A stretch of DNA of 64,000 nt from Podarcis cretensis (taxonomy: Eukaryota), in assembly GCA_951804945.1 (NCBI GenBank), contig OX638159.1:65844001-65908000 (forward strand), written 5' to 3'. This document shows positions 27,231-64,000 of this stretch, piece after piece. The first letter of the stretch is position 1, and each line of letters begins with the position of its first letter. The position numbers and the translations under genes were made by a program. A model generated the notes under the pieces. It ran no database searches and was not told the origin of the DNA. It saw only the letters and a list, made by a program, of their open reading frames with translations.

Positions 27231-27630
27231 TGAGACGCTCCAGAAAGTGACTTGTAACATTTTAGGTAGCTGCTCATTGACATTTTTAATCCGCAATTCC
27301 TGTTCTTAACAGAAGCTTATAAATAACATACCATACATCACTTTATAGTATACATAACACTGGTATACATGTTTCGTGCTCTCCTACAACCCTACTATTT
27401 AGCTGCAGTAATAGTAAAAGAGAGATTCCTAACATTTCATGTTAATAAATGGATTCATTGTTATGATGTTTTAATATACTTTTTGCATGTGATTCACGAT
27501 ATCATTTGGTCTTTATGAAATGCTCCTTTGCAAGTTTTGTGTTTAAAGCTCTTTTTTCACCCCTCCTGCCCTTTCTTTTTTTTCTTTGCCCTTCTGTCCT
27601 TCTTATATTTCCCCCCTCCACACGTATCAG

Positions 27631-30600
27631 ACCAGGATCTTTAGTTAGCAATGGGAAAGTCAGGATCATTCCATTTGATTACGAAGTTGGCCAAGAACAG
27701 GAAGAGTGTGAAGAGAACTATGAGGAATTAGGCAAACAGTTAATAGAAGATTTTTTAGAAAAAAGTCACAGGACTAGAAGTTCACAGGGACGAAGGAGCC
27801 CAAGGCTCTCAAAAAGGGAGAACTTTGGCCATCATGAAAGAGGAAGATACTCACGGAAGGCTTGCCCAGAATCAGGACATCCTGATGTTCCTTGCTATCC
27901 AGAGGAATATGACACAATAGACAGGAGAAGAAAGAAGAAGCTGAGATATAACAATTTTGAAGAATGTGAGCGAACTATACTGCAAAGCAGTAGTAACCGG
28001 AGATTTTCATCAGGCAGCATTAAAGCAAGAACTGAACATAACCTATATCCTGATTATGATGAAACTGAGAAATGGGGCAGCAGCCCCATTGAAAGTGAAG
28101 AACAGTTACCGGAATATCCAGTTCTGCGTCCATACAAGAATGGCCTTCTAGTCAAGAGTGGCAAGTTGTCCTCTAACCAACGCGCAAAGCATGACTCAGG
28201 ATCAGTCCATTTTGATGGTGAAAATGAGATCCATTCAGAACAGCCAGCTCACTCTTTTGTGCCATTGGGTGCCCTTAAAGAGTTTGGCAGCTGTTCATCC
28301 AGCGTACTCCTGTACTCCCCAGTTTCTGATGATGATGATGAAATGGAAGAAATAGCAATACTTTCCCAAGCATGGCGTGAATCCAGTGTTCGCCATGTTG
28401 GAGACCTTACTGACACCCGTACTGGAAGTGCCATATCCCTGTTACCAAGGGACAAAAACTCACATAGGATGAGAGGAGGAAAGCACGGCTTTCTTAAGCA
28501 AGACTTGACCCTCTCTCCTGTTGAAGAGCCAACGGAAGAATACGTGGACACAATGGATGAACTGCAGTGCTTAGTTGAAACTGTGTCTGAATACTTAGCT
28601 GAAAAAGAGGAGGAGATTAGCAAATTCGAAACCCTTCCTGCGAGCAAAAACGCAAGCGATTGTGCCTCTCCCAAACTGGCCGGTGCTGATAAGTTGGCGG
28701 AGGAAAGTGCTCCTTTGGAACATGCAAAGCCAGCCGCTTCTGCTGCAGAGGAGAGTGAGGGCAGCAAAGGCATAACAGAGGCATTGCCAGACTTGTCTGG
28801 GGTGAAGAACACAGTCAGCTCCTTATTTAGTTCTTTCACCGAAAAAGTGGGCTCAGGAACAAAGCACTTAACAGCCTCAGTTGAAAAAATTGTATCTCCC
28901 ACACCAGAGAAATCTGAAGCCCCTGGTCAACCTGAGGGAGGCCTCACAAGTCTGTTTTCAAGTAAGCCTAAGTCTGAGGGTGCCTCTCCAGAACTGAAAG
29001 CAGAAAACAAATCGGAGGCCAAGCTGTCCACGGCAGCTTCCCCTTCTGTGACCCAGAGTAGCCGTGAGCGAGAAGCCAGTGATGCCAAGGCCAACATCCC
29101 AGAAAAGACGGCAGGAGACGACAAGGCTCCTCCAAGTGTCCAGGATGCTTCAGCAAACTCTGCTCCACCCTCTTCTCTGGACCCCAGCTCAGTCGTGAAC
29201 TCCGTCTTAGGCATGTTCAACCCTTTGAAAATCTTCTCCGAAAAGGAAGCACCGAAAAAAGAGACTGCAAAACAGGAGGAGGCTGGGAAGGTGGAAGCCA
29301 CGCATGCCAGTGCTTCTGAAGCCAAGGCAAGTGGGAAGGCAGCTGAAGGCAACGCGACGAAACCCACCAACGTTGCGCCTCCCGAAACGAGCAAGAGCGA
29401 GGCAGAGGCGAGCGCAGGCAGCGGCCCCGTCTCCTCCATCTTTGGCAAGCTGTCGAGCTCCGTTAGTTCTTTCAGCTTGAAAGCCAGTTTTGAGAGCCTG
29501 GCTGTTCCCAAGCAGCCAAGTGGGCCGCAGAAGGCTTCTGATGTGCCGCTGCAGGCCACAAGTCAGCCAGATAAAGTTGTTAAAGAACACCCAGGCATGC
29601 CAAGAAATCCACAACCTGCAGGGAAAGTGCCAGAAAACAAGCCAAGTGAAGCCAAGAAGGAGACTGGTAACGCTCCGCCGTTGGAGCAGGGGGAACCATC
29701 TGAGAGCTTTTTCAGCCCACTTAAGAAATCCTTCAGCCAGTTGCTACTCCCTTCTTCTGCTACTGAAACTGTGCCAAAGGAGCCACCACCGGGCTTGGGG
29801 AAAAGTCACCGTTCTGAAGATGATGTCAGGAAAACAAGCTCCGCAAACAGCGAACCCAACTTCCCTTTCACCAGTAAGCTCCAGATTCCCTTTTTGAGCG
29901 GTTTTGGCTTTTCAGACAAACCACCGCAGGACAACAAAGAGAAGCCAGGAATTTTCACTTCCTTCTTGAAAGCTGCTTCTGTGGAAAACCTGACAGCTTC
30001 AAAAGATCAAACTGCCCCACCAAGTTTTAGTGGCAAGCCACCAAATGCTGAAGAGGGTCACAAAAGCAGCAATGCAGAAGCTGCCAAAATGGAGTCGTTA
30101 AAGTCTCAGGCAGTTCCCGAGGCACCGCAGAGAAAAGAGGAGCCGATGAGGAAGAAAGAAACCAGTAAAGGAGATGATCTGGGTGCACCAAAACGTGGAG
30201 ATAAAGACCAGGGTGCCTCAGACACTTCAAAAATTGCACACATGGATCATGATGCCAAACGCATGGGGGCTCTGGACCACAAAGATTCCAAATGCAGGGG
30301 GGAGCTGGCAGCCCCCACAAAAGAACCTGACTTAAATGCTACAGCAGGAAAGCCAGTGCTTCCTGGTGGAATCCGAGAGGACCAGGTAATGGATGATACT
30401 CAGAAGAAGGCCCCACAGCCAGGGCAGGGGTTGCTCTCGGGCCTCTTCCGGCGGGCGTCTTCAGACCACATAACCCACACGGAAGAGTCCAATGCTAAAA
30501 ATGAAACAGACAGCCAGAAGAGCAGATCAGCTGGCTTACTTTCTGGATTATTTAGGTTTGCTTCAAGTGAAAACCTGACCGAAACTATGCCAGATAAGGC

Positions 30601-33600
30601 AAAATCAGGCTCTCTGGGCATAATGAAAATTTTTGAGAGGAGCGAAGAGACTAGTTCTGGTGACAAGTCCGTTGGCTCACATGTGACTCCTGGTCCCCAA
30701 GAAAGCACTGGGGGGAAACAGGAGACGGGCAGCTTCATAAAGAACTTCATGCAGAGGCCAAAAGAAAAAGCGGAGGAGGCAGTGACCGAGACTGCGAAGG
30801 CGAATGGTCATTTGCCTCACCCAGAACTGAGCAAAATGGACAGCGGACATGGTCCCGTCTCTTGGCAACCCCCCTCTCAGAATGCTTTAAGCTCACAGCC
30901 AAAGATACAAGACTTATCGGGGCAGCCAACTCTCTACAGACAACCTACGGATTCCAATATTTATCAAGCAGTTCTCAACGAAAGGTCAAATGCATTTCTC
31001 AATTCCTCTTTGCGGAATGCTAAATGGTATGGCCACTCGGAGCAGCCTCTTGCTCTTGAGGAAACCAGGAGCCACTCTAGCCTTGACTGGGAATATGATA
31101 CAGGAGCATTTTCTCTCAATGGCCACCAGGTGTCCTTGCCCGTTTACTACGTCTTGCAGCAGAATTCTGTCCCACTGGCTGAGTTTCTGGAATGGCCAGA
31201 CTCCAGTGATGCCGTAGTGAACTTGTGTAAAAAAGATGACAATGCCAATGTCGTGGATTGGAGGTCAAATGCCAGTTTTGATGCCCTGAGCATAGATTTC
31301 AGTGTCATGTCACACGAATCGTTTGATCAGTTAGACTTACAAGATTTAGGTCTAGAAGAAACTGAAATGTGGGCAACACATTCTCTGAATGGAAACTTTC
31401 CTCCATTTGATGACTGCAGCTATGTTTTGGAAGAGATGCCCATGGACTTAAGCTATTCGTCGGCATGTGATGGCAATATGTGGGCCTTAATTGATCAGGA
31501 GTGCTTGAGCTTGGAAGGCAGTTTTGTCTATTCATCTTATAGCCAGGAGTACCAGGACTGGCTGATGCTGCTTGAGAAGGGCGTGTGGTGGCCATCGGAA
31601 GATGGCGATTGTGGATATTACATGTACAGGGACGGTCAGTTTGTTTATTCTCTGCTCACCGACCCCACTGGGCAGTATGTCTACATTTGCACTCCTGACA
31701 CTTACACCTACCCAGACTACTGGGATTATAATTATCCGCAGAGCATTTTGCAGAGCACTGTCTTGGAAGATGACATGATTGCCGTTTGCGGTTTCAAAGT
31801 GCCTCTTGGTAATGAAGACGAGTTATTCTGGTTTGCTGAAGAGGAGCAATTGGATAATTACTCTGTAAACAAACCACTTGATTTGTCTGTAGCTCTGCAG
31901 AGAAGTGATCAACTTATGAACATGAATTTAGAGACCTTTTCGCAGATGTTTGAGGAGTCCATTTATTACCAGAGAGAGCAGCCTTTAGACTTTTCAGGGT
32001 ACAAACTTCAAAAACTCAAAGTAGACTTTAGGCCTGAGAATGACATGGAGTGGCGCTCAGAAGAGCCTCCCCTGACCCTTGACCTTAGAGTTCACTCCAG
32101 GGTGGCTTCCAGTGGGAGGCTAAAAGATGATGCTCTGCCCAAACATCTGGACAGGACCCCTGCTGTGGCAGTTTCTGAAAGTGCACAGGCAAGACGGTTT
32201 GGTTTCCATATATTCCAGTCTTCTGCCAAGCCTGAGCCTTCATCGGCGTCTCAAAGTGTTACAGAAGTCAAAACCACCGAAGAAGATAAAAAGCCACCTC
32301 TGAATAAAGTTGCATCTTTATTCTCTGCTTTGGGTGGCCTGATGGGTAAGGGTTTGGAAACGCATGAGACAGTGGAAGATGCGGCTGTGAAGAAAGAAGA
32401 ACCGGTGGTGTTGGGACACAAAAACGATGCTCTTCCAACTATGCCACCCAGGAAAACAGGAGAGGATATGCAAAACCAGCAGCACACTGAGCATGAACAA
32501 GAGAGAAAAGAGAGAGGCAGATTAGTTAAGTCTGTTAGGGATGAAAAGCCAATGATTTCTCAGAAAAAGCCTCAGCTGGTGAGGTCTTCCTCTCAGCTAA
32601 GCCAGCGTCCCGTGGATAGCAAGACCAGTCAGCTGGATAAAAGTGTTAAGCCTGCTCCCCTCCCAAGTCAACCAAAGCCCAAAGTGGGTGAGGATGAACC
32701 CAAGAAAACCCAGCCAGCCCCCAGCCAAGCGCCCACGGAGGCTGAGGGCACGTTGTTTAAAAGTGCTCTCAAGATTCTCAGCCTGGGAGAAGACTCCTCC
32801 ACAACTGCAGCACCCAATAAAAGTCAAGGCCCCGGGTTCTTTGATTTCTTTAAAACGCAGGTCAACAAAGCCCCACAGCCACCGCCAGCACCCCAAACAA
32901 ATCTGACGAAAAATGAAGCTGAGAAGAAAATGCCTCAGGAGAAAGTGGAGCCCCCAGGCATTTCATCATTCTTTGGTTCCATAGGGGATCTTTTCAAAGT
33001 CGATGCAGCCCCTGCCCCACCAAGTGCTGCTGCTCCACCAAAGAGTGGAACCCACACCTCCCTGAAACCGAATGACAACGCGGACCAGCGTAGCAGAGAG
33101 CCAAGTAAGAGCAGCACTCCTGCTCCTCAAATCCCCGTGGAGCAGGCTCGTGGGGAAGCTGCCCAGAAGGCCGCAGTCCCTAAGGAAGAACAGCATGGCA
33201 AAGTAGGCAAGGAAGCTGCTCCAGTGAAGAAGGAGGACATCCCCACCGCTGGGAATGCAGAACCCAAGCCTCCCATGCAGGCAGGACCTCGAATGGACCA
33301 AGCAAATCGCTCTCCAGGGCAGCATGGCCATGGGCCAGCTGTTGCGCCGGGACCGCAAGGCCATGCAGGAGCCATACCTGGTAAAACTCAGCCAGGAAAA
33401 GCCAGTCAGCCACCCAGGGAGTCTGGGTTTAGCCTGCCTTTTGGCTTGTCACAGGCAGCACCTTCGAAGCCTCCGCAGGCCCCGCAGCCGGCTGGCAAGA
33501 GCATCTTCTCCTCCTTCTTCGGTGCCCCAGAGAAAGCCCCTGCCCCAGCTCCAGGAGCTCCTAATGCCAAGCCCCCGGAAGCAGAGGGTCTGTTCAAGAT

Positions 33601-36450
33601 GCCTTCTTTCTTTTCCGGAGGGCCCACCGCAAAGAAGAACGTGCCTCAGAGCAGCTCCAGCTTCAGCTTTTTCAACCTGACCTCCTTCCTGGATGACAAA
33701 CCACCGGCAGCTTTTCCTGACAAGGGGAATATTGCAAAGCCACCTCAGCAGCAAGCCAGCAACCTGGGAAGGCCGCCTCAACAGCAAGCAGACGCAAAGC
33801 CATCTATGAAGCAGTGTGTTTCTGTTGACTCTGGCATTGGACTTGCCAGACAGCAGGGCTTGAAGGATAAAGAGGCAGCGGCGGGTGTTATAGAAGCAGT
33901 ACTTGGAAAGCAAGAGGCTGTTGGCCTGGAGCACAAGGCAAGTGAGTTAAAAACTCCTGAGGCTGAGCATGCTGCGGCAAGTGCTTCAGAAGTGGAAAAT
34001 GAGGTAGAGGTACCTTTTGTGGCCAGTAAACCTCCTGATGATGGTACAGATAGAGAAGACCACTCAGTCTATCCTGATCCTGGCTCTCAGGTCCCTACGC
34101 TGCAGGAAGACATTGCGCCTTCCCTTCCGGAGATTCCACAACCAGAGGAGCAGCTGCAAGACAATGCAGAAAAGAGTGGTGGTATTGTGGTGTCCTCTGA
34201 GAAGGAATTTGTTCCTTTAGTTGGGAACGAGACTTTTGAAAAGGCAGAGCCCGGTCCAGTTTGTGATGAGACCTCTGTGGCTCTTGAGCCATCTCCTGCT
34301 CCTGGAGACCTTTCACGGGAGGTTGTACCTGAAGAAAAACCAAGCGCCCCTGAAGTCAAGCCCCCGGAGCCCAAGCAACCTGATAGGACCCCAAATACTG
34401 CAGGAGAGCAGCAGGCTCAGGGCCAGAGGCCTCTCCCTCAAATGGCAGCAGCAACACCTAACCTGCAGGAGAAACCTAAAGAACCTGAGGCTGACAAATC
34501 AGTTCTAGATTCCTCAGTTGAAATGTTTTCCAGCTTCATGACGAAGATGAAACCAACCAAAACATTATCTGGCTTCTTTTCCCAGCCTCAGACTCCAGCA
34601 GCTCCTAGTGCCCAAAAGAAGAGCACTTCGTTTTTCGGCCTTTCCTCCCTGCCCACTGGGCCTCCTCCAGCATTTACAAGTGATCTCTTTGGCATTTTTA
34701 AAGGAGCAACAGATGAGACCCTTTCAAAGTCTGCAGGGAAGACCGCAGGCACTTCAAAACCCCAGGAAATGAGCCCCAGGGCAAAGGAGGCTGTGGGCCC
34801 ACTTCCTGGCAAAGGTCTCGCAAAACAAGATAAAGCCTCTAGGGATGAACTTTTAGGGACAAATGCCGGCAGCGTTTTGAAACAACCGGACCAAACCTCT
34901 AGGGCTGAACCTACAGAGAAAGAAGCTAGCAGTGACTTGAAACAAGATGCCCCTTCTGCTTTAGCAGATGAGAGTTTGGGAAACGAATGTAGAGCAGTAT
35001 TGGAAGCTGAAAGCAGTGGAAGACCTGAACATGGTCTGGAACCCTCCCTTAATGCTTCAGAAACTTTAGACTCAAGTAGGGATCAGGGCCCTGAAGTGGT
35101 ACAGCTGGACACAAACTTACTGGCATCTGATGAAGCAGGGAAGGCTGCCCCGTGTAGTCAAGAGGGACATGATGCAGTTGAGACGGTGGTGCTGCAGGAG
35201 AAGAGTGAAGTGCCTGTGGAGCCCTTAGAAAATGATGCTGTTCCTGCTGTTGAAGAGCAAGTGAGCCCGGCAGGAGAAACAGACGTTGGCCAAATGGATT
35301 TGGACAGTACACATGAGCTGGAACCCAAGGTTGGTGAGGAAGATGAACACCTGAAACTGCCAGAACTGACGGATACTTCACTAACCACTGAAGAAGTAAC
35401 TATAAAGAATGAGGCAGATGCTGATATTTGCCCACCAGACACGTTTGAGACGCTGGAGATGGAACCCAAAGCTGCTGCAGATGAGGCCCATGACTTGCCC
35501 CATCAGGATATAGAAAAGGTCCCTGAAATAAAATCTGATCTTCCTCCTGAGCAGAAAGAGCCTCTAACCACCAGCGAAGCAGCCCCAGAAGCTGCTCCCT
35601 TGAAAAGCAGTTTGGCTGGTAAGAGCAAGCCAGCCAGTGCTCCTACAGAGGCCAGCAGCACCAAGCCCATGTTTGAAATTCCAAGCATGCCCACTTTGCC
35701 CAAATTCGGCTTCATGTCTTCTGCAGACAGCAGCAAGCCATTTGGCTCCTTCTTCTCTGCACAGCCGCCTTCGGCAAGCAAGCCTGCGCCTGAGCCAGGC
35801 CTCGTGTCCAGCTTCAACAAGTTTTCCTCAAGTCTGTTTGGTGGAGGAAGTGATGAGAAAGCAGGTAAAGTAGAGGGCACTCCGGGTGCTGTGTTTGGAA
35901 AGAAGCTGGACTTCTCATTTCCGTGGCAGAAAGATGCCAAGGAGGCAAGTCTCAAGAAGGAACCAGATGTGCCAACACCAAAAGCTTCCTCCAAACAGGA
36001 GGTGGCCCCAATTGCTTCATCCAAACTAGATTTGAAGGCACCAGAAGCTGTCTTGAAAGCCGAGGAACAAGCAGTGGATGTGACCGGGGCTGATGGGAGC
36101 CCAAACCTCTCTGCCTCTGACCAGCCAGCTGACAGTGCTGCTGATTCAGACCTTTCTTCTAAGCAGCCTGACAGCAAGAGCAACGAATGCTTCGATGGTC
36201 CCACACCTGACATTCCGGTTGCGCCCAACAAGGAGCTGGAGCTTGAGGCCTCCAGAGAAATGGAAGATGAGCCAAGCACCATTTCCAGTGAGCCTCCTGG
36301 GCTCCCTTTGGAGGAACCAGCAGAAGGCGCCACACCGGTTCTGGATGAAGTAGAGCAGAAGGAAAGTGTCCCTTGTCCAGAAACGGAAACACTTGCTACT
36401 GGACTGCAGCCAGCGGAGCAGAGTAGCCCTGAGCCACTCAGGAAGAAAAG
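27631..36450 (+). CDS. UNC13B: UNC13B giant alternative exon (8,820 nt, 2,940 codons, phase 2-2); read-through stop at 36470-36472
   Basis: Uninterrupted frame; ~80-nt AG-free pyrimidine tract and atcag acceptor (27629-27630) in the phase required by exon 25350-25572; candidate AG|gccagt GC donor at 36451 in the phase required by exon 38506. From memory, human UNC13B has a long isoform with a multi-kb exon at this position. The 5' boundary is firmer than the 3' boundary. Confidence 0.85.
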
Positions 36451-36889
36451 GCCAGTAGCCAAAACGGCATGATAAATGGTGCCAACTTGTGAGCCATTTA
36501 TAATGCAAGTGCCGTAACAGTAGATGCCTGACCTCGTAGATCAGACTCCTCCTCTAGGCTGTGTTTGGCATCAGTAGTACCCAGTGGTAGGTAGAGTTGT
36601 GAACGCTAGTTGCTAGACTGCCCACCCAGAGCCCTTCCTGCCCTTCTCAACTTCTGGTTTCCTTTGTTCCAAAAGGCTGCCATGACTCTTCTCCTTTGCT
36701 CTCCCTTTGTGCTGTGTCCTTGTGAGTGAGCTGCTTTGAGTATTAGTTTCATTAACCTTCCATAGCCTAATTGTGTGCGTGAGAAAACAACTTGCACCTC
36801 TAGATGACATGGTGGGAGGGAGGAAATCGGGGGCTCTCTTGGTTTGCAGAAAGCTTAGTTGGACAACATACCAGGCATTCACATTTTAA

Positions 36890-57300: not shown

Positions 57301-60114
57301 CCCGGAGGCCTTGTTGCTGATCCCTGGCCTCAGGTTCTCCAGAGCGAGACGGCTACCAAAGACAGATGGAAAACCTACATTAGCCCATCTTCCATGGCTA
57401 ATAGCTTTGCCCGTGTCTATCAGTCAGATTCGTGTCAGCCTTGAAAAAAGCTTCCCCAGCCATTTCCCCACATGGTGCCTTGCGGTGGTGAATTTTGTGT
57501 GTGAGTTCTGTGTTGTGATTCCAATCAGTTTACTTGGGTGATCCTTAGCATTAGGAGACAAGGAGTGTCTTGCTGTTTAACTCTTGTTGATTGATGTTTC
57601 CAACTTGATTGGCTTTCCCAGGAGCTACAATTAGCTATTTCAGCATCTTAATGGCTGCATTATTGCAAGGCAACAGTATCTTTGACTGGATCAGCTTATC
57701 TTCAAATGAGTTTTTCTGGGCCCTTAATACCAAAGGAGCATCCTTTATCACCTGAAAGCTGGTTAGCAGACTTGCAAGGCTAGCTAGGCAGATACACATT
57801 TTCACATTGTGCAGCCTTCTTGAATGCTATTTTGAGAGTCTACTGGAGGAAGATCTCAGCAGGAGAGAGACTCTTTCCTTGTCACACCCCAGATGTGCTG
57901 CTGCTATCCATCAGCCCCCCACAGGTGGGGTTGGAGTTTGGAGTGCTTTTATAAAAACTCCCCTTCTCTTCCCCTTCTTGCTGTGGTGGTTGCTCAGGGT
58001 ATCTGATCAGCTGTATGCTGCAGCCACAAGATCCAGTTTGATTGCTGCCGAGATGAGTTTAGGACCAGAAGAAATCCTAAGGTCAAATCCTGACACTGCC
58101 CTCCATGTTCCCTCCCTACCCACCGTTGGACTGGCAGAGAGCTGAAAGCTATAAATCCCCTCCTCCACCTGCCAGTTCCTAAACTTTGTTGCTTTGGCCA
58201 CGATTCTCCTTCTCCAAGCTTTTGTGTTCTCCAGGAACACAAATATCCTTTGGGGTGTCATAGAATTCCAGACTCAAAAAAGGTATTTTTTTAAAAAAGA
58301 GTAATTGGTTTGTTGTGATTCCATGATGCCCAGAGGTTTATGCCCCCAGATAGGACCCGCCCCCCATTTTCCCATTTTTTTTTTAATTGACTGCTTTCTG
58401 TAGGTCCCCTGCTGTAATACCATGCTGCCAAGAGGTGGGGGGTTTTTTGTAGTTCCCCAAGACCCGCCCCCCCATGTGCCCTTTTGAAAGATGCCCACGG
58501 TGTGGTCTGCTCCCCCCTTTGATATGCTACCCCCAGAGGGTTCTCAGCCTGCACACAATTTAGTCACCCTGATACAGAGCGTGTGATGGCACCCAAAGGG
58601 GCTGCACCTTGTTTTCCCTTGGGCTCCCTGCTAGGTCTCTGCCACCTCCTTGGCAGCAATTTGGGGTTTTGCTTGCTGACACCCTTGTGGCTGCTGGATG
58701 GTGCCCTCTGCCTGTCAGGCCAGCTTTGAATAGCAGGGGCTTGTAGGCGGGGGCTCTTGTGGGGTGCCCCACAGCTAAGGAGCTGCCTTTCTCTGCTGAC
58801 TGCAAAGCTTAAACATGAAAAAAAAAAAAATTCCTTTCTGGGACTGATCTTAGTGCTTTTAACAACTTAGAATGTTTTTATTGCATATTTTCATAAACTG
58901 CTTATCCAGCCTGAGCTTCTGGGGATAAGCTTTTTTTTGCACCCGTTCCCATTATGGTCCTTAACGGTTTCAGTGGAAGTTGCAAGCCCAGCAAACTTCA
59001 AACAAGTTTTCTAGCGATAAATGCCTCTCTTCCTGCCCCCCACTCCCAAAGCAGTGCATCTCCTCTTAGGAAATTGTTCCTGTACTTGGGCTGAGTTGTG
59101 AAACTTCATCTGGGAGGCATTCATCTCTTTCCAATGCCTGTGTCTCCAGGCCTGCCCCCTCTGCTCCAGTGTGCTTAGTCACTTAGAGATAGTTAGTGTT
59201 CTTTGACACTGGAAATGAATGGCTGTTTACTCTGTGGGCTGAAACGGTGTCACTGTCATTGATGTGCCCTCAGAAGAAGCGAGATTTTGCAGGGCAATGC
59301 CGCTCGCCCTCAAGAGAAGAACACACAGCTGAGTAGCAGGCCGATCCTGCAGACACCTTCCAAACAGTCCGGCGGCTTTTTCTCTTAAACAAAATTGAAG
59401 CTTTTTCCATCAGAAAAAAAGTTGTCTTCTTAATTATTAAGATTTCTGCCCCAGCCTTCCAGTCCGTAGTCAGAAAAGTAAGCAGAAAAGCAGACAGCTT
59501 TCAGTAGAACTCGGAAAGAGACGGTGCTTCACACAATACGCTGCTCTGGGATTCTGAATACTGTGCATGGAAAAGTGGGTTTTGTTTCGCTACTCCAGCA
59601 GTTTCTGAATGGAGCTGAGTGTCGGCGGACCACGCTGTGCTGAGCCAGGCTGGGGGGCTTGCTGGAACAGAGGGCACCCCTCTTTGAGGAGGGTCCTTGA
59701 GCATCTGAAGCTGAGGAATGCAAATCCACATAGGAAATACAGCCTGCAGGGGTTTCTACCTTGGGCAGGGTTAAAAGTAGTGTAGGAGCAGGAATAATGT
59801 CGAAGGGGTGTATTTAAATGCTTGTTTAAATACTGTCCCCCAAGTTGTGAGCCAATGTGTGAAGATGATGCTGTTCTGTGTACTGCTCAGAACTCTCCCT
59901 TGACTTTGCAGGTGCCCCAAAGAGCCCTCTCCCCTCCTGTGTCTCCAGCAACTGGCATTCAGAAGCATATCTATCATCTCCAACTGCAGAGGCAGAGCAA
60001 AGCCATCATGACCCATAGCCATCGATTGCTGTCTTCCCCATGAGTTTGTCCCATCCTCTTTTAAAGCCATCCGAGTTGGTGGCCCTCGCTGCCTCCTATG
60101 GGAGGGAGTTCCAC

Positions 60115-60117
<3 letters not shown>

Positions 60118-60163
<46 letters not shown>

Positions 60164-60240
60164 TTATTTATACCCCACCCATCTGACTGGGTTTCTCCAG
60201 CCACTCTGGGCGGCTTCCAACAGAATATTAAAATACAATC
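60118..60240 (-). mobile_element. L2-clade 3' end with (TTA)n tail
   Basis: Reverse complement of the L2 tail seen at 47300-47440; (AAT)n at 60118-60163. Confidence 0.8.
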
Positions 60241-60244
60241 CCCC

Positions 60245-60573
60245 CCAAAAAAACTTTTATTTAGCATTTACACCAACAGTCCAGCAGTTACTTAAACTTT
60301 TATTTACCTTACAATATTAAGACATTAAACAGCTACAGTGAAAACAAATGCTATTGGCAACTTGCAAATAAAGAGTTCCGTTAACACCTAAAAGTCACCC
60401 CTCAGACGCAGCACAAGATGGAGGGTGGATTCCTTCTGGATGTTGTAGTCGGAGAGGGTGCAGCCATCTTCCAGCTGCTTCCCGGCAAAGACCAGCCTCT
60501 GCTGGTCAGGGGGAATGCCTTCTTTGCCCTGGATCTTAGCTTTGGCGGTCTCAGTGGTGTCACTGGGTTTAAC
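60245..60573 (-). pseudogene. 5'-truncated polyubiquitin (UBB-like) processed pseudogene with 3' UTR
   Basis: Ubiquitin residues ~17-76 ([20 protein letters not shown]) plus one extra residue F and stop (60388-60390), as for the last unit of polyubiquitin; followed by an AT-rich UTR with AATAAA; several substitutions in a normally invariant protein. Confidence 0.9.
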
Positions 60574-61692
60574 TGGACTTCCTGGCTCTGCTCCGAGTGC
60601 CTGTTCCTCTCCTCCTCCTCCTCCTCCAGGACCATTCAGCACCCACTATTTTACCCCTATTTATTTTTAAGGAACAACTGCAAATGTTAACTCTCGCCAG
60701 GTTTATGGTAAATCTTTCTTACCGATGCAAAATAATAGTTACAGAAACTGGCTGAGTTTCTTGCTTACTAGGCCAGTCGCAGTTGGTGTAGAATTATGTA
60801 ATTGTCCAAGGTTTCAATTCTGTGAAACCTTGCATATTTCTCAGTTGCGAGGAGGTGGCCCAATAAAATGTCTTCTGTATTATATGCGTATCTCATGCCG
60901 CTAGTGCCCACTAGAGTAACAGCAAGGAAAGAGGCACCTATCCTCTTCCAAACCACTCAAGTTTTTTTGCGCAATGAAGAGGCATGCAAATTCTGTTAAA
61001 TTCATAAAAAGAAGTGTATTCCTGCCGCCAAGGAGATTGCAATCTAACCTTCAACATGGGGAGGGGGAGAACGTTCTGTTCACTTGCCTGTATCTTCATT
61101 AAGGGATGAGGACTAAGTGGTTGTGCTGAGCCTTCCCTTAACTGATTTTAGGATATTAGCAGAAGACCTTAAAGCTATAAAAAGAAAGCTTCTGTATGCA
61201 GGCAAGGCCTTTTCTGTGTGTTCTTTTATCATTTTTCTTGTGAAAATGATAACTGCACACAGACAAATCTGTGCCCATACAAAGATGTACCTTGAAGCTG
61301 GAACTGGCTTGTGCCTGCGCCTCTTAGGGAACAGGGCAGAGCTGCTGGCTGCATGCCAAGGAGCGCTTTAGGCAGGTAATGGATAGGCCAGGATATTGTA
61401 CTTGAGGGGGATAAATAGAGAGGGCTCTGCTGCTAAGACTTCAATTTCGATAAAATTCCAGTCTCCCTGGTGGAAAAGGAAACCATTCTCATAAAGCAAA
61501 TTTGGGGGGAGGTGAAGGCATCCTTTACTTGTTGCAAGAGTCAGGGAGACCTTCTTGTTTCACCACTTGGCCCCAGGACCTTCATTCAGTTGGAAGGCTG
61601 AAATGGAACAGCAGGTTATACCGGCATGCTTGCAAAAATAGATTTGTCCTGCTGCACGGGTGCAATTTTGTTGGATTACGTGGCCCAAGCTA

Positions 61693-61723: not shown

Positions 61724-62030
61724 TGTGAGTCGCTTTTTTCTCCACTGACTCCGATACCCAGCGTCTCTGTCCCTTCTCTTGACAGCAGCTTCTGATGAGT
61801 CTTAATCCTTGGCCGAGAGAGCCTTGCTGGGCAGGCAGCGAGGGGCAGAGGCCTCTGCCGCTTTGTGGCATGATGAGAGGGCGCCAACACGGCCACTGAG
61901 GATGTGCGCCGGCAGAGGCACCCTAAGGCTAGAAGATGACATTGCTTCTGTGCTTAGAACATCTGCTGTGAAACTCCTAACTGGGCAGCCCTCTCAGAAG
62001 CAGAAGGCCCTGCTGTTTCTGGAGGAGAAG

Positions 62031-64000
62031 ATGAAGAAGCTTCTGCAAGGGCCGGCGAGCGAGCTCTCCCTGAGCCAGAATCACCACCAGCAGCTTTCCC
62101 TGGTGGAAATAGAAACGGACACCTTTGTCTGTGGCGTCAATAGGAAATCTGCAAGCAGTGACTTTTCCGCTGCTCAGGGGAGGAGCCCTGGGGCTAGGGA
62201 GGCCAGTAGAGGTGGGCTGGACTGGGATGGATACATCAAAGCCCCACGGGCGTTAGTTCCAAGCCAGTGTGACTCAGGGGGTGTCTCTGGCCGCCTGGCC
62301 GCAGAGAGCCTTCTGGAGCAAATGGAGAGCCCCGAGGGGCAAGCTGATCTCGCTGCCCTGAGCCTTGGCACTGGCTGGAGGGGAGTTGCTGGGGAAAGAG
62401 AAGGGGAAGGGCCCTGCCCTCCAAACAAGCCCCTCGCCTACACTCCCTGCAGCCCTGAGCCCAGAGACCGCTCTGCCGATGTCATTGAGTACATTGTGAA
62501 AGAGCTCCAAGGGATAAGTCGCATCCAGACCGAGATTGCTGAGCTCCAGCAGCACCTCACCTTGATCAAAGGCTCTGTGGATGAAGTCTCCAGCTGCGTG
62601 GACAGTGTTCTGAGCGAGATTGAGGGCCTGCAGAGCAGCTCTGGCCCCACCAGCAAAAACTCCCCATTGCCAAAGGCCAAGGCCAGGGAGCCCCTCCTGG
62701 GAGGGCCCATCAGAGAGCCAGTGTTGTATTTTTATGGCATCCCAGAGCAGGAGGGGGAGAACACCAAGGAGCTAGTCCACCGTTTCTTGTCAGAGTACCA
62801 CTGTTTCAATGGCATTCAGCGTAGCAAGTACATCAAGGATGCCTACAGATCTGGTGCAGCAACAGGCAAGCAGCTGGCCCCACGACCCGCTGTTGTAAAG
62901 CTTGCTAATGCTGAGCAGCGAGATTTCATTCTCCAGAAATCGATTCTTTTGCAAAGTGCAGGAGTTACCATTGTGGCCAGCAGTGAGCAAAGCCAGCAGA
63001 ATGGCCAGGTGGGTCCTGGGGCACAGCTGGGCACCTTGCCCTCGTCAGGCCAGAGTGGGAACCACTGGGGCTCCCTGCACATTCGTGGGGAAGTGGTCAG
63101 GACGGACGGAGATGGGCAGCTCCAAGTGGACTCTTGCCAAAACGCTTGCCAAGAGGTTCATTGCCGTGTAGGGGAAAGGCTTAACTTTCAACCAAAATCC
63201 ACCCTACCTAGGAAGAGCAACTTAATTGCTGAACTTGAAGAAAAAGTGGGGAGAGTTGTGCAAATAATGGGCAGTAGTGAGCAGACTTTGCACAAAAACA
63301 GCTCTTCCGCTGGAGTCCTTGATGCGTCCCACAAGAAGCTGGAAGGCCCTGGGCATGAGAACAAAGGCAGGGATTCCTTGCCATCCCCAGAGTGCTTGGG
63401 CAAGGTGCCCGCCTTGTGTGAGGGAGGAGGGGGACGTGCCTCAGATGCTGAAAATGCCACCAAGGGCAGCTCCTCTCCTGTGGAAGAGGACCAAGCAGGA
63501 GGGCTGACTCCAGGGGAAAGCGAGACAGACTGTGATGCCACCACACTGGAGTTTCTCAGTCCTGAGCAAGTCAGTCTCCTGGAGGAGGCACCGGTGGCCA
63601 TGACCACTCCTGGCTGTGACGGTGCTCTGTGCAAATTGGTTGACAGCAGTGAGACGCTCAAAGACATGATCCAGATTGACCTGAACGAGCAAGACCCAAC
63701 TGATCAGGTCTTCAGGGATGTCCTAGAAAATTCCCAGTACTTCCTTGAGCACTCTCGGGACAGCATTGATCTCGTGGACATGAGGTTTTACACTAACAAA
63801 CTGGGCAAAGCGCTGAATCACTTCCGGTCTGCACTACAGGTGGTGTTCCACAAACTGGAGACCGGGGACCCAGAAGTCCTCCTTGAAGGGGAAAAGAGCT
63901 TCCATATGAACAGTGAGCCAGCACCTGCCCTCCATAGCCCAAGTGTGCATGGCAGCTTGGATACCTTTGCTGAAACTCCCCCTAGTCAGTCTTCTGAGAG
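62031..64000 (+). CDS. UNC13B: UNC13B bMunc13-2 (brain-type) N-terminal exon, 3'-partial; exon begins at acceptor 61786/61789; upstream in-frame ATG at 61902
   Basis: Translated by hand, open to the window end: MKKLLQ...DVIEYIVKELQGISRIQTEIAELQQHL..SVDEVSSCVDSVLSEIEGL...KLGKALNHFRSALQVVFHKLE (63798-63860, matches a bMunc13-2 CaM site as I recall it). Absent from the ORF track because no stop falls in the window. Confidence 0.93.
   Translation, partial: MKKLLQGPASELSLSQNHHQQLSLVEIETDTFVCGVNRKSASSDFSAAQGRSPGAREASRGGLDWDGYIKAPRALVPSQCDSGGVSGRLAAESLLEQMESPEGQADLAALSLGTGWRGVAGEREGEGPCPPNKPLAYTPCSPEPRDRSADVIEYIVKELQGISRIQTEIAELQQHLTLIKGSVDEVSSCVDSVLSEIEGLQSSSGPTSKNSPLPKAKAREPLLGGPIREPVLYFYGIPEQEGENTKELVHRFLSEYHCFNGIQRSKYIKDAYRSGAATGKQLAPRPAVVKLANAEQRDFILQKSILLQSAGVTIVASSEQSQQNGQVGPGAQLGTLPSSGQSGNHWGSLHIRGEVVRTDGDGQLQVDSCQNACQEVHCRVGERLNFQPKSTLPRKSNLIAELEEKVGRVVQIMGSSEQTLHKNSSSAGVLDASHKKLEGPGHENKGRDSLPSPECLGKVPALCEGGGGRASDAENATKGSSSPVEEDQAGGLTPGESETDCDATTLEFLSPEQVSLLEEAPVAMTTPGCDGALCKLVDSSETLKDMIQIDLNEQDPTDQVFRDVLENSQYFLEHSRDSIDLVDMRFYTNKLGKALNHFRSALQVVFHKLETGDPEVLLEGEKSFHMNSEPAPALHSPSVHGSLDTFAETPPSQSSE

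Follow-up and report, generated by a model that had tools for sequence, protein, structure and literature searches.

ORF1p, the protein encoded by the first open reading frame (ORF) of LINE-1 (L1, long interspersed nuclear element 1), is known in human from the structures 2w7a, 2ykp/2yko/2ykq, and 2ldy and belongs to the Transposase_22 family. Its domains are a parallel coiled coil, a non-canonical RNA recognition motif (RRM), and a C-terminal domain. The coiled coil of mammalian L1 ORF1p carries the trimerization motif RhxxhE, and the RRM and C-terminal domain form a positively charged RNA-binding cleft (PMC5940361), both domains being required for RNA binding (PMC12129022). A counterpart of the first two domains is found in a stretch of 64,000 nucleotides from Podarcis cretensis (GenBank assembly GCA_951804945.1, contig OX638159.1, positions 65,844,001 to 65,908,000 of the forward strand), referred to below, at its full length, as the window. 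It lies in the b-exon of UNC13B, the first coding exon of the gene in the form that encodes the synaptic priming factor bMunc13-2. Our analysis indicates that this exon probably holds an exapted ORF1p-type module, which would have been acquired once and kept by selection, and whose RRM most likely has a structural or protein-interaction role rather than that of an RNA chaperone.

In rodents, the coiled coil of bMunc13-2 binds the C-terminus of ELKS1 and serves to anchor the protein at some of the active zones. Kawabe et al. mapped this binding to residues 145–187; Munc13-3, the product of UNC13C, does not bind ELKS1, and the N-termini of bMunc13-2 and Munc13-3 were called unrelated except in one brief coiled-coil stretch with 52% identity (PMC5379939). 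A canonical exon of UNC13C was stated to be homologous to L1 ORF1 in the Methods and a supplementary figure of a Genome Research article of 2025, and in its preprint, with no further analysis. In that work, an MMseqs2 screen at a cutoff of E 1e-10 and more than 50% coverage matched non-mammalian UNC13C isoforms to LINE ORF1p of Dfam (PMC12129022). A sequence-only reading of the window had taken the module to be apparently uncharacterized. This does not hold fully, the ORF1-like exon of UNC13C being already in print. For UNC13B, our literature search found no paper linking it to ORF1p, nor any joining bMunc13-2 or Munc13-3 with the term 'RNA recognition motif'. New here are thus the UNC13B copy, the identity of the ELKS1 site with an ORF1p coiled coil, and the paralogy of the whole b-type exon between UNC13B and UNC13C.

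Homology of the module to ORF1p

The sequence-only reading had proposed that the N-terminus of bMunc13-2 is a domesticated ORF1p-type coiled coil and RRM, a proposal that profile, structural, and profile-profile comparisons now support. The two peptides on which it was based, DVIEY...EGLQ (62478–62633) and VLYFYG...GVTIV (62721–62975), are indeed encoded there, in that frame. An AlphaFold2 (AF2) model of the module has a mean predicted local distance difference test (pLDDT) of 80, and values of 87 or above prevail in the helix and the RRM core. The RRM-like domain comprises strands at model residues 98–102, 135–140, 154–158, and 180–183 and helices at 112–122 and 161–175. It is preceded by a linker whose pLDDT is below 50 at residues 74–91 and whose identity among orthologs is 0.24. 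When the model was searched with Foldseek against 350,542 PDB chains, the best 7 matches were all human LINE-1 ORF1p (2w7a at E 6.6e-4, probability 1.0). VIA aligned model residues 95–184 with ORF1p residues 154–252 of 2w7a at Z 10.1, with a root-mean-square deviation of 2.5 Å over 89 residues. Further ORF1p entries reached Z 9.3–9.6 (9.6, 9.4, 9.4, and 9.3), and every other RRM scored 8.0 or less. In a scan of 48,161 representative chains that was independent of Foldseek, Z was at least 8 in three chains, all of them ORF1p.

Sequence profiles lead to the same family. A profile built from UNC13B and UNC13C only, compared with the 177,635 sequences of the PDB set, gave four significant matches, all to ORF1p (2ykp/2yko at E 2.9e-5, 2w7a at 1.7e-4, and 2ldy at 7.5e-4); beyond these, the best match had an E-value of 1.7. 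The HMMER alignment pairs VLYFYGIPE..EN with NLRLIGVPE..EN, IKDAYR with IQEIQR, and PRPAVVKL with PRHIIVRF. Of the five ordered ORF1p motif blocks noticed earlier, blocks 1 to 3 are recovered by this alignment and blocks 4 and 5 fall within the structural alignment, and the coiled coil stands directly N-terminal to the RRM, as in ORF1p. Of the checks named in the sequence-only reading, Foldseek and profile comparison with L1 ORF1p gave significant matches, with no other fold matching better, and a search of Pfam for Transposase_22 gave none.

Free-standing relatives were sought in a library of 1.84 billion representative proteins, in which a single protein, P0047, was the sole non-UNC13 relative found. 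The hidden Markov model (HMM) built from UNC13 only matches P0047 at E 7.4e-15 (Z = 1.8e9), and 40 of 120 members of its family at E 1e-3 or lower. By hhalign, UNC13 and the P0047 family align with a probability of 98.7 and E 2.6e-16, at 30% identity over 137 columns, and the P0047-family profile itself matches ORF1p at E 7.3e-8, with an alignment that reaches into the C-terminal domain. Like UNC13, this family of about 138 relatives has a coiled coil followed by an RRM, and it contains the closest free-standing sequence relatives of the module. Unlike UNC13, it keeps a region resembling the C-terminal domain, and most members end in a NADAR domain. When homologs were searched with the profile of this family, 138 matches were obtained, nearly all of which were NADAR fusions and none of which carried a PF02994 label. 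Because profile-sequence, predicted-structure, and profile-profile evidence agree, homology of the coiled coil and RRM module to the ORF1p superfamily can be considered established.

The P0047 family also merits attention in its own right. Proteins P0047–P0055 and P0189–P0299, from environmental eukaryote assemblies, share the order coiled coil, ORF1p-like RRM, C-terminal-domain-like region, and NADAR (PF08719). The family is large, often multi-copy, and unannotated, and has an invariant YSRRDNL motif before strand beta-1. Such a fusion of an ORF1p-like protein to an ADP-ribose-processing domain seems to be undescribed, and may represent an unusual retroelement. Searches of the ESM Atlas gave unnamed chordate clusters, Baculo_FP_2nd (0.87–0.90), and Transposase_22 (0.86–0.87), which, at scores below or near 0.9, are leads only. 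No link to baculovirus FP25K is claimed: in the BFVD viral fold search, FP25K appeared only at E 0.04–0.12, next to one unnamed match at E 5.7e-5. A motif scan of the window in six frames, meant to yield a local bona fide ORF1p, found no L1 ORF1 remnants.

The bMunc13-2 exon, its paralog, and their age

UNC13B in its bMunc13-2 form has its large first coding exon at 61786–64000 (+) of the window (Table 1). The nearest protein is from emu (73% identity), followed by those of Anolis ('Unc-13 homolog B', 69%) and, at 60%, horse ('unc-13 homolog B isoform X18'), and in the tree the window pairs with Anolis within an UNC13B clade that has a support of 100/100. These relationships point to a sauropsid genome, with no sign of a human origin. 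The Anolis ortholog (P0002) continues into the C1, C2, and MUN domains, whereas the window ends inside the exon. The exon starts at about 61786; an in-frame TAA follows at 61803, and any upstream exon is therefore non-coding in the 61806 frame. Candidate start codons are found at 61902 and 62031, the second being matched by the MKK/RLLQ motif with which the Anolis and horse UNC13B proteins begin. The 43 codons between these two ATGs resemble the predicted N-terminus of emu, and the sauropsid translation start may lie upstream of the mammalian one.

Contigs from four sequencing runs of a closely related species (X1–X4) tile 61784–64000 with no internal joint and leave 59000–59834 and 60670–61334 empty; the RNA nature of these runs was guessed, so that expression rests on that guess. 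The 'one large intronless exon' of the sequence-only reading is borne out by this tiling for at least 2.2 kb. One 658-nt contig of run X2 matches the window solely at 61784–62008, its remaining 433 nt lying elsewhere. Since the splice acceptor ends at 61785 and this contig departs from the window there, at least one exon lies upstream, and the best reading of 61786–64000 is that of an expressed exon, the first to carry coding sequence, behind at least one non-coding exon.

Table 1. Features of the bMunc13-2 exon in the window (positions counted from the first nucleotide of the window).
Feature	Position	Strand	Basis
Splice acceptor, polypyrimidine tract and CAG	61763–61785	+	TCTCTGTCCCTTCTCTTGACAG ending at 61785
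Open reading frame, bMunc13-2-specific first coding exon of UNC13B	61806–64000, past the window end	+	Translation
ORF1p-type parallel coiled coil, by position the published ELKS1-binding site	62469–62639	+	AF2, conservation, three-copy model
Linker between coiled coil and RRM, poorly conserved, probably disordered	62640–62711	+	pLDDT, identity
RRM-like domain, ORF1p-type	62712–62981	+	AF2, VIA, Foldseek, profile, conservation
Third conservation island DMRFYTNKLGKALNHFRSALQVVFH, common to UNC13C, outside the ORF1p module	63777–63851	+	Identity, UNC13C alignment

Upstream of the exon, a ubiquitin-like ORF, presumably a processed retrocopy of ubiquitin, occupies the minus strand at 60388–60642 (more widely, 60002–60669). 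The depth of runs X1–X4 over it reaches thousands-fold at 90–95% likeness, which fits reads of real ubiquitin mRNAs.

A similar segment mentioned earlier for UNC13C proved to be real: the coiled coil and RRM of UNC13B and UNC13C align gap-free, including about 90 residues past the linker. In these alignments, the two paralogs share more than the published coiled coil, namely the RRM part and the block at 63777–63851 as well. This third island aligns to the UNC13C block FGSTLQRAKSALEVVW and corresponds to residues 583–607 counted from the ATG at 62031. A 'candidate CaM site aa 572-594', CaM being calmodulin, has been described (PMC7017353); the island lies close to it, and an equivalence, suggested by position only, is conceivable. 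The two copies have evolved differently. That of UNC13C has evolved slowly, with 74–85% identity across teleosts and gar, and keeps the AHRLG and KPRPIIV motifs, whereas that of UNC13B has a long branch and is neutral or acidic, in contrast to the basic UNC13C copy.

Carriers of the module include UNC13B of the basking shark (P0007) and of tetrapods, as well as UNC13C of gar, teleosts, and tetrapods. In the tree, UNC13B and UNC13C are split from the outgroup with a support of 100/100. Monophyly of UNC13C is unsupported, UNC13B being nested among the short UNC13C branches, with a long-branch warning. As the module is common to UNC13C and shark UNC13B, the simplest history would be a single acquisition before the UNC13B/UNC13C split, that is, before the gnathostome radiation. 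Later losses may have affected the RRM part. UNC13B-type proteins of ray-finned fishes (P0010–P0045) keep the coiled coil, and no RRM remnant was detectable when one was looked for in them. Among individual gene models, those of gadid UNC13C (P0044/P0185) are without most of the RRM, and that of gecko UNC13B (P0005) is without its second half. Either the RRM-like domain would be dispensable in some lineages, or these fish, gadid, and gecko models are faulty. In another teleost model (P0032, 'Unc-13 homolog B', 2948 aa), the coiled coil lies at residue 2337, after a giant N-terminal region, and this gene model suggests that the giant UNC13B exon (window 27549–36472) and the b-type exon may be joined in one transcript.

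Conservation within the exon is confined to islands. Across six UNC13B orthologs, identity is 0.69–0.79 in the coiled coil, 0.51–0.68 in the RRM, and 0.69 in the third island, and 0.11–0.35 elsewhere. Comparison with the close relative represented by runs X1–X4 gave, among the substitutions listed, 7 synonymous changes to 1 replacement (a conservative change) in the three islands, against 16 to 16 in the remainder of the exon (Fisher test, one-sided p = 0.06, two-sided p = 0.11). With such small numbers, these counts are only suggestive of purifying selection. The same relative shows two in-frame insertions: 3 nt at 62859, by which the beta2-beta3 loop of the RRM-like domain is longer by one codon, and 12 nt at 63138, in the disordered part.

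Coiled coil, RRM-like domain, and rival readings

In the AF2 model the coiled coil is a single helix (model residues 14–70, pLDDT 96–97), with hydrophobic I/L/V residues at heptad spacing of 3 and 4. Numbered from the ATG at 62031, it begins at residue 150. By positional equivalence, it would thus be the ELKS1-binding element of bMunc13-2, binding having been shown in rodents. The link between the bMunc13-2 N-terminus and ELKS1 that was mentioned in the sequence-only reading is exact, the published site being this very coiled coil (PMC5379939). Trimerization had also been suggested. A three-copy model of the coiled coil and RRM forms a parallel, in-register heptad bundle with an ipSAE of 0.47, as compared with no more than 0.01 in three controls; the runs share 42% of contacts or more, and partner pLDDT is at least 60. 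Of proteins solved as one-chain pairs, 21 of 30 attained the mark for self-association, and of single-chain proteins 0 of 23 (17 of 29 and 0 of 30, respectively, for eukaryotes), this calibration having used two copies where the modeled assembly has three. The coiled coil probably still self-associates as a parallel bundle, which the model supports while leaving the number of strands unfixed.

The following scenario accounts for these data. The coiled coil and non-canonical RRM of a retrotransposon ORF1p would have been exapted into what is now the first coding exon, with loss of the C-terminal domain. This would have occurred once, before UNC13B and UNC13C separated and gnathostomes radiated, and the module would since have been kept under purifying selection within an exon that is otherwise fast-evolving and disordered. 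The coiled coil, probably still a parallel bundle, would serve bMunc13-2 as its ELKS1-binding anchor at active zones, in line with the experiments in rodents. The RRM-like domain appears to have been kept as a folded unit and, because UNC13B is without the C-terminal domain and a basic surface, it is most likely a structural or protein-interaction domain rather than an RNA chaperone.

A number of observations weigh against this scenario. The AF2 alignment was shallow (17 UNC13B/UNC13C sequences), the Z margin of ORF1p over generic RRMs is about 2 units, and identity to human ORF1p is 15–19%. Neither the window segments nor the 699-aa frame matched Transposase_22, Tnp_22_trimer, or Tnp_22_dsRBD in Pfam at E up to 10, and a single-sequence phmmer search against the PDB gave coiled-coil noise only; the signal therefore needs a profile or a structure to be seen. 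No C-terminal, dsRBD-like domain was found after the RRM: sequence past 62981 has an identity of 0.16–0.23 and no Pfam match, and the alignments to 2ldy and 2ykp stop inside the RRM or where it ends. The RhxxhE motif is absent from 62469–62639 in every heptad register inspected, and the passing complex prediction may echo ORF1p trimers that the model remembers, or generic coiled-coil behavior. Downstream of the module, the frame is UNC13B exon sequence to the window end, and no LINE ORF2 encoding endonuclease and reverse transcriptase is adjacent, as is expected of an exapted fragment. Finally, the nearest free-standing relatives are unannotated environmental NADAR fusions and not annotated LINEs, and the LINE clade, strictly even the LINE origin itself, rests on the ORF1p matches in the PDB and on the UNC13C report (PMC12129022).

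Some of these points could be taken to mean that a generic host RRM came to lie behind a coiled coil by convergence, with no retroelement ancestry. The RRM fold is very widespread, Z values of 7–8 against the model are attained by many RRMs, and no Pfam family matches. This reading is nevertheless strongly disfavored, and we consider it highly improbable: the PDB holds hundreds of canonical RRMs, and yet the significant profile matches and the chains at the top of the structural scan are ORF1p without exception. The order of the motifs, the position of the coiled coil before the RRM, the lack of an RNP1/RNP2 consensus, and the lack of an RRM_1 match in Pfam at E up to 10 are in keeping with the ORF1p type, as is the hhalign match to a family with a coiled coil, RRM, and C-terminal-domain-like region. 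An origin from an ORF1p-like gene other than LINE-1 ORF1, be it of another non-LTR clade or of the family that ends in NADAR, is a fairly unlikely alternative; under it, 'domesticated L1 ORF1p' would be too specific a name, although the fold superfamily would still be right. It draws on P0047 being the only non-UNC13 match, its family being mostly NADAR (PF08719) proteins with no PF02994 member, and on the UNC13 HMM favoring that family (E 7e-15 among 1.84 billion) over human ORF1p (E 3e-5 among 177,635). Neither the window segment nor UNC13C nor P0047 is detected by Transposase_22, and PF02994, PF17489, and PF17490 have no match in UNC13C (P0008/P0009) or P0047 at E up to 1. Human L1 is, however, the only ORF1p in the PDB, so that its weaker score says little about the clade. 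Non-mammalian UNC13C isoforms match Dfam LINE ORF1p, their exon having been called L1 ORF1-like (PMC12129022), and the P0047 family, multi-copy and ORF1p-like including its C-terminal domain, may itself be a retroelement ORF1.

The other question is whether the RRM-like domain still binds RNA, which would make bMunc13-2 an RNA-binding presynaptic protein, as in the Arc-like function imagined in the sequence-only reading. In favor of this view, the fold and its defining residues (PE, EN, R, PRP, and RD) have been conserved for more than 400 million years, and the UNC13C domain is basic, with an isoelectric point (pI) of 9.4–9.8. The UNC13B domain, by contrast, ranges from neutral to acidic, with a pI of 8.1 in both the window and horse and of 4.8–5.0 in emu, Anolis, and shark; it is without the C-terminal domain that contributes to the RNA-binding cleft of L1 ORF1p (PMC5940361, PMC12129022), and ray-finned fishes dropped it yet kept the coiled coil. 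As the C-terminal domain and the basic charge have been lost, RNA binding by the UNC13B domain seems unlikely, and we give the Arc-like reading little credence. UNC13C would be a better candidate for residual nucleic-acid binding.

Significance and comparison with known systems

An exapted ORF1p-type module would provide the bMunc13-2 N-terminus with a domain map in which each part has an origin: the coiled coil and the RRM fold would be of ORF1p type and would stem, like the third block common to both paralogs, from one ancestral exon. The ELKS1-docking site would be a repurposed oligomerization helix of a retrotransposon. This raises the questions of whether the helix is a trimer, whether ELKS1 joins the bundle or replaces one of its strands, and which partner the conserved RRM-like domain has. 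Oligomeric Munc13 assemblies are thought to template SNARE complexes. A bolder proposal, which we deem rather improbable, is that, through the module, bMunc13-2 and Munc13-3 are constitutively held as parallel trimers that pre-organize Munc13 oligomers, and that the Munc13-3 copy, perhaps also that of UNC13B, keeps single-stranded nucleic-acid binding. If this were true, presynaptic release sites would contain an RNA-handling protein of retroelement origin, comparable to Arc on the postsynaptic side. To the known ORF1p exaptations, such as L1TD1 and Lyosin, the module would add one of the oldest, which arose before gnathostomes and is located in a core synaptic gene; its impact is tempered by the paralogous UNC13C case already in print (PMC12129022).

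Compared with human LINE-1 ORF1p, the UNC13B module has the same parallel coiled coil directly ahead of a non-canonical RRM, and corresponding ordered motifs hxhxGhPE..EN, I..x.R, and PRxhhVxh. It differs in a disordered linker of about 24 residues between coiled coil and RRM, in a neutral or acidic rather than strongly basic domain, and in having no C-terminal domain, RhxxhE motifs, or Pfam match. It is also located outside any LINE, fused to a priming protein with the architecture C1-C2B-MUN-C2C.

Arc/Arg3.1, which is derived from a Ty3/gypsy Gag, offers a conceptual parallel, as a nucleic-acid-packaging protein of a retroelement that is reused at the synapse. Unlike the UNC13 module, Arc has a retroviral-type capsid fold, comes from another class of element, and acts postsynaptically. 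Capsid formation and RNA transfer have been demonstrated for Arc, whereas the UNC13 module is known here from sequence and models. Closer relatives in kind are L1TD1 and Lyosin (exon L of MYL4), which, like the UNC13 module, are ORF1p-derived coding sequences under host selection. L1TD1 differs in being a stand-alone mammalian RNA-binding protein. Lyosin shares with the UNC13B module a coiled coil and RRM without a C-terminal domain, and likewise is the exon with which the coding part of its host gene begins, but it is limited to Sauropsida. The UNC13 module, which would predate gnathostomes, appears far older than either of them, and is carried inside a presynaptic priming factor.

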